64,000 bases of DNA. It comes from Diadema antillarum. Taxonomy: Eukaryota. The notes beneath the pieces were generated by a model. It was not told where the DNA came from. It did not search any database and saw only the letters and a list, made by a program, of their open reading frames with translations. Below are positions 46,813 to 54,996 of this stretch, one piece after another. A program made the translations under genes and the position numbers. Position 1 is the stretch's first letter; every line of letters starts with the position of its first letter. The stretch covers positions 1,240,001 to 1,304,000 of the forward strand of contig NW_027271168.1 in NCBI RefSeq assembly GCF_040938485.1, given 5' to 3'.

Positions 46813-49055
46813 TCAACCACCTTGCTGGAAGAGATCCATGAGCTGCTGCTGACACTCACTGTTCAGCTGCGGGATGACGAAGGCATGGTGCCAGTGGAAG
46901 CGGCGAACAACGGAGGTTTCCTTGATGACAAACTGCTCCCAGGTGCCGCGATAACCGCCGATGATGAAGTAGGTCTGACCGACTTCCACGTTTGGGCAGC
47001 GGCAGCGAGCCGAGCGACCGTACTGCGAGATGACAATCCGGCGTCCAATGCTCGGTACGTCGTACGCCCTCTTGTGGACTTCGTTGACACGCATGGTAAT
47101 GCGAAGTTCGGCATTGTAGTTCTGGATTTTCTGCACTGTGCCTGTAATGACTGTTATGAAAAGCAAAATACAATGCAAGGGTGTGCAACAGCAAGATGCA
47201 TTAATCTAAATGCAATAAAGCAGGTAATAAGATCTTGGGTAAAATATGAATTATCTTAGACTAAACTCCACTTTAAAAATTAACCCATCAATTCCCCAGA
47301 ACCATATTTCTGTTGTTTTGTTGCTATGTCTGATATGCATTGTTAGTATTTCATAAGGTAGAGTAAAATTTCTTTTTCAATTGAGCCCTTTGTTGCTCAT
47401 ATACATTGTACCACTTTTTTTTTCGAGTTGCAGAAAAGCCTCTTAATTTCTAAATAGAGATTACTACCTCCGCCAAGGAAGGAAGTTATGTCTTCATCGG
47501 CGTTTGTTAGTTTGTCTGACTGTGTGCAAAATAACTCTAAAACTTGTTGGATTTGAATGAAACTTACAGGAAAAGTTGATAATGACACAAGGAACAGATG
47601 ATTAAATTTTGTTATTGACCTGAGAATGTTTAATGAATTTTTGAAGGATTTTTAATATTTTGGTAGGTAAGGTCAATGAACTTGGGAATTCAAGCTGTGC
47701 ATATTTGAGGTTGGGCCAGGCTCTGCTTGGCTTTGCTTGGGCCAGGCACCATGGAGCTGGAAGCTGATGACGAAAACAAAAGGCTTCTACATTGGAAAAT
47801 TGGGCAATTCTCAGCATGCATGTATGGGTTGAAATGAGCTATTTGCCGAAGGTCTGCGCTCTCAGAGTGCTTTTTAGTTTTATAAATGATTCCCAAATTG
47901 TCAAACTTCTGCATTTTCATTTTTTTTTTCATTTTTTTTTTGCAGGGGGGGGGGGGGGGGGGGGGGGGGTGTGCAAATGTAATGAATATAACCAGTTCCA
48001 TCTATTTTTCCCCTATCTAATCTTTTCCAAATAGATATATGCAGTAAAATTTAGGGTTAGACCTTTGACATTTTGCAGATACGAGGTCTTGTCGCCCCAG
48101 CGACGATATATATATCCATAACAGGTATGGCACCAAGAGGTATATCATGAAATCAGGGCATTGTGGGATTTTTTTTTTTTCTTCAAAACTGACTGGTGAA
48201 AGACACTTTCTACCCTCACTCTTCTCAACCAATTGAGAGTGCACTTCAATTGGTAACTTAACTACTTGTATTACCATGGTTGTTATGGAAACATACCAAG
48301 TACATGAAATATATCTTTCTTCATGAAGTCCATGGGACCAGATATGGTAGACTGCCTTACCAAGCCTCACTGAAGTGCTGGAATGCAACAGTATTTCTAA
48401 ATAACTGTCCTTATTGCAATTTTAATCATTTTTTCAACATCCATATCAAGTGGAATGACAAAACTCTACGAAAATCATGTTCCCTGGAAACTTCCCTTAA
48501 ACTCCAGATTTGACAGGTTGGTAGCTACTGCATGTTTTTTAGAGCTGAAAGAGAATGTCTTTCAGTGGTTTTCTTTTCTTCAGCTTGCCTTTGACATACG
48601 GATCCTTTATTTTCTTTTTGAAAACTACAAAATGTGAAAATCACACACATGTACTTTGCAATCATCCTGTTAGCATATAAAATATACATGTGTATGGCTG
48701 TGTCTCTTTTGTGTCTGTAAATTGGTATCTGTCCACGTGTCTGTATACGTGATGTTGTCTGTATTTGTATTCGTTCATGTCTGTGTCTTTGTATGCATCT
48801 GTATTATGTCAATGTCTGTCTCTGTCTATGTCTCTCCTTGTCTATGTCTGTGTGTATGTGTGTCTGGTGAGTCCATCTCTTTGTCTGTCTTCACCTCCAT
48901 TTGTGTTCCAGAGATTTATAAACACCAGCATCTTACCTAAGGCTTTTGAATTCATACTGGAAGAAACCGTTACTCACCAAACTTTGCTGGGCAGTAAGTT
49001 GCATTGCTCACCTCCAGCGAGTCTGCCTTGCACCTCTTTGGACACCTCCTATTCT
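46813..49055 (-). CDS. NTR (netrin C-terminal / C345C) module encoded by the last two exons of the HHIPL gene
   Basis: Exons 49055-48978 ([26 protein letters not shown]) and 47150-46813 ([10 protein letters not shown]...[17 protein letters not shown]...NSECQQQ*). The six Cys show the NTR pattern C..C...C / CxCP.l..g..Y.i.G / terminal C. Phase-1 junctions. Confidence 0.8.
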
Positions 49056-52000: not shown

Positions 52001-54996
52001 TGCGTGATATAGAACATGCTTACTTACTGATACCCCATGAGATTCTAAAACTTCTCATCCTCATCAAACTCATCGCTTGAATTAACTAAAACAAGAACCA
52101 CTTAATAACAAACATTAGGTATGATGAGCAGAGGCTAAAAATCACACATACCCAGACATGTAGTCACCGTAGATGTATTTCCCTTGCAGATTGGGATACT
52201 GGCATCCCCTGTAGACAAAGCCACCAATGACTGACTTACCCACTGTGTGAGGATAGGCATGGATTGGTAGGACTTCATCCTCTGCCAAAGGAAAACAGAG
52301 AAAACAAAGTGAAAATGTCACAGCTCTCCATGGAAAAGAAATGTAACTGATTGCTTTGTTTGTATCAAACAGGGATCAATCCGCTACATACTTTTCATTT
52401 ATTTGATGATTACTTGAGCACATACAGGAGTAGTATTCTGACAGTTTGAAACATCTACCTTGAGTGGAATTATAACCTTGTGTTTCAAGTTAGAGTGCTG
52501 TGTAATATACCTGGCTCTGGAAGGAATGTGCCTTGAACTATATTTTCTTTCTTTTTTTCTTCTTTTTTTTCAAACAAAGGTGGCACACATAGTCACTTGT
52601 GACAAGTCTCCAAAATTATATTAGATAATGTTAGTCATCATCAGAGTGCTTCACATATTACCACAATTCATATTTCACACCCTTCATCTATATTTTCTTC
52701 TTTTTTTTTAAGATGAGATAAATTTCAATATCATGCCAAATACTTTTACGTTTGCACATTTTTCCATACCATGACATACACGGGCAATAGCAATGAGTGT
52801 GTATTAGTGTGTGTGTGTGTGGGGGGGGGGGGGGAACCCAATCAGGAGCAGTAATGAAACCCCCCCCCCAAAAAAAAAAAAAAAAAAAAAAAGGAGAATC
52901 CACAAGGCACAACCCCTGTTCAAAATTACAATACTTCCCAAATGGAAATAGAAAAAAAAAATGAAAAAAGTTCAAGGCTTTTACATCAGTTTTAACTTAA
53001 AAGCAAACAAAAGACAGATTTTTCTTTTTTCTTTTGAAAGTGTCTTCTACCCTTAAAAGTGTGACTAAGAGACCAACATGTTCACTCACCTAGCCAATCA
53101 TGGCATATTGAGTTATCAAAGCAGGCGAACCCTTCCTTTCCCCTCCATCCGTAGTTACCCCCCTTCACCACGATATCGATCTCTTCGTAGCTGTTCTGCC
53201 CAACGTCTCCGCAGAAGATGCGCCCCCTCCCGTATCCGGTCTGTCTGTCTCCACGGTCCACTGAGCATCGCCACATGTTGCGGGTGCCGTACGCATAAAT
53301 CTCGTGTCGCCTCTCGCTGCCGTTGTATGTAACAAAGGGATTGTCTGGTGGAATTGCATAAGGCAGACCATTCTCTTGATTGTCGACATCGATTCTTATC
53401 ACAGAACCTAGCAATTCTCCTCTGAAAAGACAAAAATGGAGCAATTCCAACCATAAATCAGGCGAAATCTGAAATGATGGTAATAATGCAATCTTTAACT
53501 TATTTTGTTGATTGTACCTTCATTCTACATAGATGCTCATTAAAGTGGTCAAACCATTTCAGTGTCTGATATGACTGTTATCAAAGATGTTGTCTTAAAT
53601 TCTACAATAATCAATCAAAACAAATAAAGTGCAATTAAAATAGAAACTTTTTTCTACAGAAAAGTAGCAGTCAAGGATATTTAAAAACAGAATAATTCAG
53701 CAAAATTGCATGAGATGTTAGCATTTTCATAAATCAGTATTCTTGAGTAAAGTCATGACAATAAACAGTGAAAAAACTTTATCACTGTTTTGAAGGACAC
53801 CATTATAACAAGTGAAAACTTGGGTTGTTGCCATACAAAAATTGTGCGTTTCAGATGAGTTTAGCTGTGCCCTTGAGAATTCTCCGTTTGCTCTTTTCAA
53901 GTTTTTTAAGGATGAAGTTGAAATGATTTTCAACTTACAGATTCTGAGCATTCCCATGCTCACCAAATGGATCTCCTCCATATCCACCATCACCAATGAA
54001 AGCATAAAAGTAGCCCTGGTCATCGAAAAGCATCTGTCCTCCGTTATGGTTTGGGGCTGGCTGTTCAACATCGAGGATGACACGTTCTGTGGTCATGTTC
54101 ACGCGATTGGGGTCATTGCTCATCACCTGGAACTCGCTGATTCTAATAACAGAATTACTTGAGTCATCAGTGTAGGTGCTGTAGTAGACAAACAGTCGGC
54201 TGTTGTTGACAAACTGTGGGTGGAAGACGAGCCCCAGGAATCCCCTCTCATCCCCCCACCTGTTGGAGGTGAGCACCGAGTCCTGGATGTCCAAGAATGG
54301 CTCATTCAGCCTGGTTTTATTCGGCAGGAACACATGGACAACTCCTACTTGCTCTGCGATGAAGAGTCGGTGGGTGTTGTCGTTTGCGTGGACCGCCAGG
54401 AGAGGATTGCGAAGGCCGTTAGCGAATTCCTCAAAGCACAAGCATCCGTCCCCGGCTCCCGTCTGCGAGTCCCAAGCCACATCATTCAGAAAGGAGTTAG
54501 TAAGGATGTCTGGGTAGCAGTAGTCCTCATCGGGGTTCCGGACAGTGCTGCAAAAGGCAGCCTCTCCCTCCTGATAGGCATCCAGGATGGTTGAGTCCTC
54601 CGTCAAGAGTGGTATCAGTTCTGGGCAAGTCCTGTAGAGCGACGAGCAGTAATCCCCACACAGACCAGGCAGCGTTGTCTTGCGCAACGACGTCTCGGCG
54701 TCAAATACGTGCGCAGCATACGGCGAGCACTCCTGGCACAAAATATCCTTCAGGAAGTTCTTACATGTGGCTGCGCTGTCTGCGGGTAGCCGCTTCTTCA
54801 GTAATTTGTGCAGGCGCTGGATTTCCAAGTTACGTGACAGAGTGCAGCAGCCAAAGTCTTTGTAGCCATCACAGAAGGGCCCGCTGCTTGGGTCCAGCTC
54901 AAATGGTGGAAAGAAGTCCAAACATTGTGGATGTCCTACCACTGCTGAGGCACAGAGTGCTATAATAAGCACAATTTGCATGGACATGGTGATCAT
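46813..54996 (-). CDS. HHIPL: HHIP-like protein (signal peptide + folate-receptor-like CRD + GSDH-type beta-propeller + C-terminal NTR/C345C domain), 8 coding exons, 749 aa
   Basis: Coding exons (minus): 54996-53939, 53421-53090, 52281-52152, 51133-50991, 50270-50189, 49624-49536, 49055-48978, 47150-46813. All introns are GT-AG, phases match (2,1,2,1,2,1,1) and the total is 2250 nt = 749 aa + stop. HHIPL motifs: [149 protein letters not shown]. The exact start Met is ambiguous (54996, 54987 or 54981); the splice acceptor is at 55024. Confidence 0.93.
47460..47880 (+). mobile_element. HINE-like element family 2 (last intron of HHIPL)
   Basis: attacctccgccaagga...gtttgttagtttgtctg...ggtctgcgctctcagagtgc..tagtt; homologous copies at 51315-51868 and 56191-56672. 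Confidence 0.7.
51315..51868 (-). mobile_element. HINE-like element family 2
   Basis: aactagaaaagcactctgagagtgcagacctcc ... (AACT/AAAC)n ... ccttggcggaggtaat. Confidence 0.75.

Follow-up and report, generated by a model that had tools for sequence, protein, structure and literature searches.

An HHIP-like gene of Diadema antillarum that ends in an NTR domain: probable copy of an old and conserved deuterostome architecture

Does an HHIP-like (HHIPL) gene that ends in an NTR domain represent a novelty of one sea urchin lineage, or the local copy of something older, and what would such a domain do there? The question is raised by a 64,000-nucleotide stretch of the Diadema antillarum genome (contig NW_027271168.1, positions 1,240,001 to 1,304,000; hereafter the window, with positions counted from its first letter), whose minus strand carries, from 54996 to 46813, a gene encoding a cysteine-rich domain (CRD), a propeller and, after a Pro/Thr linker, an NTR module. 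A preliminary description, made from the sequence alone, took this combination for an unusual product of lineage-specific exon shuffling, comparable to an sFRP with an inserted propeller. The analysis reported here leads to a different reading, to which a probability of roughly 85% is assigned: the gene is the Diadema copy of an old, conserved deuterostome HHIPL-NTR gene, and its NTR most likely acts as a tether to the matrix or to heparan sulfate.

The eight exons were rebuilt from the window sequence exactly as first proposed, with GT..AG splice sites at 7/7 introns, and join into a coding sequence (CDS) of exactly 2250 nucleotides (nt) that closes with a TGA at 46815-46813 and encodes 749 residues (aa). 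The two junctions that bring in the NTR, 49536->49055 and 48978->47150, are each in phase 1. The gene is already annotated in RefSeq, where residues 19-767 of the D. antillarum protein XP_071493149.1 ("HHIP-like protein 2", 767 aa) equal the 749-aa model with zero mismatches. The same eight exons are present in the D. setosum locus, to which they map without gaps, with all splice sites kept and an exact translation into the RefSeq protein; this protein, XP_072173729.1 (749 aa), is 97.1% identical to the model over 749/749 residues, ungapped. Between the two species, the ratio of nonsynonymous to synonymous substitution rates (dN/dS, Nei-Gojobori) comes to 0.072 over the NTR codons and 0.071 elsewhere in the gene, at a dS of ~0.18. 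The NTR exons are under purifying selection as strong as that acting on the propeller.

A hidden Markov model (HMM), the fold and the cysteine pattern all identify the C-terminal module as an NTR domain. Pfam PF01759, whose gathering cut-off is 21.9 bits, scores 46.1 bits on the isolated C-terminal 146 residues, 41.9 on the full protein and 36.2 on exon 8 alone. The domain follows a linker of ~20 aa that contains TTPFEPTP and has six cysteines (CPKRC...YC...C), at residues 616, 620, 633, 687, 689 and 737, for which three disulfides are predicted; in a C-terminal alignment of 11 orthologues, Diadema included, five of these are invariant and one occurs in 10/11. An AlphaFold model built on this 11-sequence alignment (predicted local distance difference test, pLDDT, 82.4; predicted template modelling score, pTM, 0.74) has an N-terminal linker at low pLDDT, followed by a beta-barrel and, at the C-terminus, a long helix. 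When this fold was compared with the PDB by Foldseek, the PCOLCE1 NTR 1UAP was the top match (E 7.5e-8; template modelling score, TM, 0.64-0.70), followed by the C345C domains of C3/C5, agrin NtA, the meteorin NTR and the N-domains of TIMP-1/2, all at probability 1.00 (entries 1UAP, 6XZU, 1JC7, 7TLH and 1UEA). A profile of the NTR alignment searched against PDB sequences found the netrin-1 NTR 8SNP best (E 7e-13) and PCPE-1 second (E 1e-6), and on this sequence comparison the nearest NTR subtype is the netrin/PCPE kind. In 9/9 orthologues tested the domain is basic, with an isoelectric point (pI) of 9.1-10.3, while the CRD and propeller are acidic (pI 4.5-4.8).

The distribution of the architecture bears on its age. 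A phmmer search of 1.84 billion representative sequences with the exon-8 peptide gave 6 matches at E<=1e-3, a small number which is uninformative on the spread of the NTR, since the domain diverges too fast for a single-sequence search. One match, a 745-aa Lytechinus pictus "HHIP-like protein 1 isoform X1", has Folate_rec, GSDH and NTR domains, the exon-8 match lying at its C-terminus. Architectures were read from a full-length word search with this L. pictus protein, and 5 were re-scanned by Pfam, 5/5 scoring above the NTR threshold. The combination of Folate_rec, GSDH and NTR occurs in five echinoids (two species of Lytechinus, Strongylocentrotus purpuratus, D. antillarum and D. setosum), in the crinoids Antedon mediterranea and Anneissia japonica, in the sea star Asterias rubens, in the hemichordates Glandiceps talaboti and Ptychodera flava, and in the amphioxus species Branchiostoma belcheri and B. 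lanceolatum. These invertebrate orthologues, e.g. S. purpuratus XP_030855138.1, agree with the Diadema protein in their domains, in the position and phase of the introns, in the basic character of the NTR and in its six cysteines, although outside the sea urchins the NTR is just 25-41% identical to that of Diadema. Among the matches listed, vertebrate HHIPL1 carries SRCR and vertebrate HHIPL2 no extra domain, and none has an NTR, which agrees with the claim that the architecture is unlike that of the vertebrate members.

The introns point to common descent as well. By mapping proteins to their loci, 7/7 Diadema introns were found at equal alignment position and phase in Asterias and B. belcheri, including the phase-1 introns just before the first NTR cysteine (...PS/E...C, the slash marking the intron) and after YC.A.F/V; amphioxus has two additional introns inside the region that forms echinoderm exon 1. 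A maximum-likelihood (ML) tree of 35 deuterostome proteins, computed on the shared CRD and propeller columns, resolves amphioxus, hemichordates, asteroids, crinoids and echinoids each as a clade and vertebrate HHIPL1 and HHIPL2 together as a separate one; it is unrooted, its sample lies outside the protostome and cnidarian HHIPLs, and human proteins among the matches were left out of alignments and tree. NTR-bearing proteins occur in every invertebrate deuterostome clade of this tree, mixed with NTR-less ones, and are not confined to one lineage. This spread and the shared introns are most simply explained by a single HHIPL-NTR fusion before the split of Ambulacraria and chordates, with the NTR absent in vertebrates. 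Since protostomes and cnidarians are unsampled, the fusion could be older still. Word searches with the NTR regions of Diadema and amphioxus returned close relatives only, protostome and cnidarian HHIPLs being beyond their reach.

Lineage specificity is thereby already refuted, and the architecture proves to be both widespread and annotated: the gene stands in RefSeq, a dozen species have the domain combination assigned by machine annotation, and UniProt names the S. purpuratus orthologue A0A7M7PTN6 "NTR domain-containing protein". Literature text searches found no description of the HHIPL-NTR architecture, and a survey of NTR architectures leaves HHIP, GSDH and Folate_rec all unmentioned (PMC3516229). 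The ESM Atlas holds no GSDH+NTR cluster among its clusters of at least 50 members, which in a family this small is not evidence of absence. What remains of value is the evolutionary point that deuterostome HHIP-like genes seem to have had the NTR ancestrally.

The amphioxus orthologues differ from the Diadema protein in having ~420 extra residues after the NTR. In B. belcheri these are residues 740-1160 (14035-15606 of the fetched locus), encoded in the same last exon, and no Pfam match was found in this extension.

The N-terminal part of the protein places it in the HHIP-like (HHIPL) family. The Folate_rec family (PF03024; cut-off 29.8 bits) matches at 50.8 bits in the full protein and at 50.8-52.3 across scans, and the corresponding N-domain of HHIP (7PGK) matches the CRD at E 1.5e-6 in a search of PDB sequences. 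The propeller is recognised by GSDH (PF07995) at 106.7 bits in the full protein, and by the HHIP structures 7PGM, 3HO3 and 2WFX at ~248 bits (E 1e-72). Vertebrate HHIPL1 and HHIPL2, which have a homologous cysteine-rich N-domain and propeller, are ~51-53% identical to the Diadema protein. The difference lies in what follows the propeller: EGF repeats and a membrane anchor in HHIP (HHIP clusters of the Atlas carry EGF families), a basic linker and SRCR in HHIPL1, a basic low-complexity tail in HHIPL2, and the NTR in Diadema, in whose full protein Pfam gave no match to EGF or to SRCR (PF00530).

At the 3' end of exon 1 lies a loop of HHIPL type, with the motif GDGG..GDPFG..GN, which is shared with Danio HHIPL1 and the invertebrate orthologues. 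It aligns to the HHIP loop ...GDGMITLDDMEEMDGLSDF..., but is three residues longer and is without the acidic MDG motif of HHIP. Where HHIP has its acidic Hedgehog- and zinc-binding loop (...DDMEEMDG...), the Diadema protein has a replacement in which the Gln of NAQN stands opposite the Asp of HHIP that binds zinc in the HHIP-Shh structures. With the acidic loop replaced by the HHIPL-type motif, Hedgehog capture in the manner of HHIP is not expected.

An sFRP is a secreted protein, as that of Diadema is predicted to be, and both have an N-terminal cysteine-rich domain and a basic C-terminal NTR. Its CRD is of Frizzled type, whereas that of Diadema is of Folate_rec/HHIP-N type and is separated from the NTR by a 400-residue propeller; homology extends to the NTR alone, and the image of an sFRP with an inserted propeller is an analogy only. 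In exon 1 no Frizzled CRD (PF01392) was found, the Pfam matches at E<=1 being Folate_rec, GSDH and a weak USP32_N alone. The preliminary description is thus borne out in part. The linker, the loop and the six-cysteine pattern that it quoted are all present in the translation, and the identity of the NTR, the type of the loop and the phase-1 introns (one before the NTR and one within it, compatible with exon shuffling) were correctly recognised; lineage specificity, newness and likeness to sFRPs were not upheld.

How, then, might the protein work? It would be a secreted glycoprotein built of a signal peptide, an acidic CRD, an acidic six-bladed propeller, a flexible linker and a basic NTR. Ligand would be bound by the CRD and propeller, as it is in HHIP and HHIPL1, while the basic NTR would most likely tether the protein to heparan-sulfate proteoglycans or matrix, like the NTRs of netrin-1, PCPE-1 and sFRP1. 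Alternative isoforms of several species, in which a hydrophobic tail takes the place of the NTR, suggest that matrix-bound and membrane-bound forms exist. This role is favoured because the NTR is basic, sits on a linker modelled at low confidence and is nearest to the NTRs of netrin-1 and PCPE-1. The latter are basic heparin-binding modules. Both netrin-1 (8SNP) and PCPE-1 (1UAP) are secreted multidomain proteins with a C-terminal NTR, and they have the pattern C..C...YC...CxCP..k.G..Yli.G...C in common with Diadema, at ~15-25% identity; the partner domains are a laminin N-terminal domain with EGF in netrin and CUB in PCPE, in place of the CRD and propeller.

Sea urchins have Hedgehog signalling, and an HHIP orthologue is unreported in them, as in annelids (PMC9695228). 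As they signal via Hedgehog without a reported HHIP, a matrix-tethered HHIPL is a reasonable candidate for a Hedgehog modulator, and the sea urchin embryo offers an easy system for HHIPL-NTR as a candidate extracellular modulator of this kind. A passage of PMC9695228 cites HHIPL1 as reported to have a positive influence on Hedgehog signalling.

Several points weigh against the interpretation of the gene as an ancient, matrix-tethered HHIPL. The basic charge of the NTR suggests heparan-sulfate binding without proving it, and a role of invertebrate HHIPLs in Hedgehog signalling is unconfirmed (PMC9695228). The predicted splicing rests on conservation across species and on RefSeq models. The choice between loss in vertebrates and gain in invertebrates depends on parsimony and shared introns, the tree having no root, and the age estimate is drawn from deuterostome HHIPLs, with those of protostomes and cnidarians outside the sample.

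A more novel reading assigns two products to the ancestral gene. In this account, alternative 3' exons would have given a matrix-tethered form with the NTR and a membrane-tethered form with a hydrophobic tail, the NTR form being the original modulator of Hedgehog (or Wnt), and the ends would later have been replaced in vertebrates, by a membrane anchor in HHIP, SRCR in HHIPL1 and a basic tail in HHIPL2. We consider this possible but unlikely. The pairs of isoforms in S. purpuratus, Lytechinus and B. belcheri are compatible with it; literature text searches found no description of such a two-product ancestral HHIPL. In isoforms or paralogues without an NTR, which range from sea urchins to amphioxus, the same linker is followed by a Ser/Gly-rich stretch and then a hydrophobic segment, which, judged from its sequence, may be a glycosylphosphatidylinositol (GPI) signal or a membrane anchor. 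In other species these forms diverge at the phase-1 donor junction of exon 6. The 680-aa NTR-less protein of B. belcheri is identical to the NTR form over the shared region, and the forms of S. purpuratus and Lytechinus are labelled isoforms X1-X4 by NCBI.

For the Diadema gene, unlike those of several other species, no NTR-less isoform with a hydrophobic tail was found. A search for an alternative tail exon on the minus strand at 40000-49535 (tblastn with tails of S. purpuratus/Lytechinus type, and a pattern scan) was negative, and the single tblastn match beyond exon 6 enters intron 6, where the frame closes at once (...PTPLGK*). Two NTR-less D. antillarum paralogues of 609 aa, 69-74% identical to the window protein and sister to the Diadema NTR gene, count as lineage duplicates. 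They stop a few residues past TTPFEP in the linker, being either genuine paralogues that are truncated or gene models that lack a last exon.

That the NTR is instead a TIMP-like metalloproteinase inhibitor, and the protein mainly a protease regulator, is improbable. The fold does match the N-domains of TIMP-1/2, and the amphioxus orthologue has a weak match to the TIMP family in Pfam (19.2 bits, under the cut-off of 23.1). Inhibition by TIMPs requires the free alpha-amino group of Cys1, whereas here the first NTR cysteine is residue 616, ~615 residues into the chain, with no conserved convertase site before it, and the closest relatives in sequence are the NTRs of netrin-1 and PCPE-1, not TIMPs. 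Furin-type release of an NTR with a free cysteine was rejected, as the RR that precedes Cys616 is not conserved: the residues just before the first NTR cysteine are RR in Diadema, FR or LR in other urchins, ST in crinoids and VT in amphioxus.

Very improbable is the view that the propeller is a working sugar dehydrogenase dependent on pyrroloquinoline quinone (PQQ), which the NTR would merely localise. The propeller retains the motifs HNGG and GDGG and matches the bacterial soluble glucose/sorbosone dehydrogenases 2G8S, 3A9G and 1C9U (E 1e-8 to 1e-12), but it is much nearer to HHIP, a binding protein, and animals are not known to make PQQ.

Hardly credible by now is the original proposal of a novel, sFRP-like Wnt/Hedgehog or protease modulator produced by lineage-specific shuffling: the phase-1 introns ahead of and within the NTR, the lack of an NTR in vertebrate HHIPLs and the silence of the literature found speak for it, and against it stand the twelve species with the same architecture, the introns placed identically in lineages as far apart as sea urchin and amphioxus, the exact protein in RefSeq and the absence of a Frizzled CRD match. 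Just as faint is the chance that exons 7 and 8 come from another NTR gene lying downstream, or from a chance open reading frame, and were fused by prediction, since, even though the two 609-aa paralogues end directly after the linker and the model rests on sequence comparison, exon 7 begins in phase 1 and has neither its own ATG nor its own signal peptide, dN/dS and splice sites are conserved between the two Diadema species, the independently annotated Asterias and Branchiostoma genes have the same junctions and phases, and tblastn found no second HHIPL-related coding sequence in the window.

The coordinates of the gene and its parts are collected in Table 1. A hydrophobic core is visible, by inspection of the translation, at the N-terminus ahead of HPQC.

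Table 1. Parts of the HHIPL-NTR gene of D. antillarum, in window positions
Feature	Position	Strand	Content
Whole CDS	46813..54996	-	8 exons; equals XP_071493149.1 residues 19-767
RefSeq start ATG	55048..55050	-	In frame, 54 nt upstream; adds 18 aa, MSYVSLVVRYLFQEQERL
Predicted signal peptide	54996-54934	-	~aa 1-21; inferred from sequence
Folate_rec-type Cys-rich domain	aa 42-170, in exon 1	-	Pfam; match to HHIP N-domain 7PGK
Exon 1	53939..54996	-	aa 1-352 + 2 nt; signal peptide, Folate_rec-type domain, first propeller blades
Exon 2	53090..53421	-	Propeller; GSDH profile positions 146-219
Exon 3	52152..52281	-	Propeller
Exon 4	50991..51133	-	Propeller
Exon 5	50189..50270	-	Final propeller blade, ...KVFKIVDPR
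Exon 6	49536..49624	-	End of HHIP-homologous region (RRGNPEEC) and Pro/Thr linker; donor phase 1
Exon 7	48978..49055	-	Phase 1-1; N-terminal part of NTR; Cys616, Cys620, Cys633, N629 sequon
Exon 8	46813..47150	-	NTR core (Cys687, Cys689, Cys737) and stop codon

The RefSeq "HHIP-like protein 2" entries of D. antillarum and D. setosum describe the same gene and differ in their start, that of D. antillarum lying 18 codons further upstream. The ATG at 54996 is conserved in D. setosum and is the better-supported start, because the upstream ATG (55050) is missing and out of frame there; the 18-aa extension is probably an annotation choice. It would make the n-region of the signal peptide longer.

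The cluster of the D. setosum protein includes two D. antillarum RefSeq proteins, XP_071493149.1 and XP_071503327.1, the second of which is encoded on a different contig and differs from the model at 4 of 749 residues. The nearly identical gene copies thus lie on two contigs, of 2.4 Mb and 3.7 Mb, and the second could represent a haplotig or else a duplication of very recent date.

Repeats are found in and around the gene. Intron 7 (47549-47712) and intron 3 (51601-51764) contain copies of an interspersed repeat in opposite orientation (164 nt, 84% complementary), and intron 5 has a long (GAT)n/(GATGAT) microsatellite at 49990-50070. A (TG)n tract occupies 49210-49260, and tracts of poly-C/poly-G lie at 52820-52890, 50620-50640 and 47950-47975. 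Some 400 bp ahead of the start codon, at 55402-55768, there is a near-perfect inverted repeat with 167-nt arms, 92% complementary, and a 33-nt spacer, which looks like a hairpin element or one of the kind of a miniature inverted-repeat transposable element (MITE) in the promoter region.

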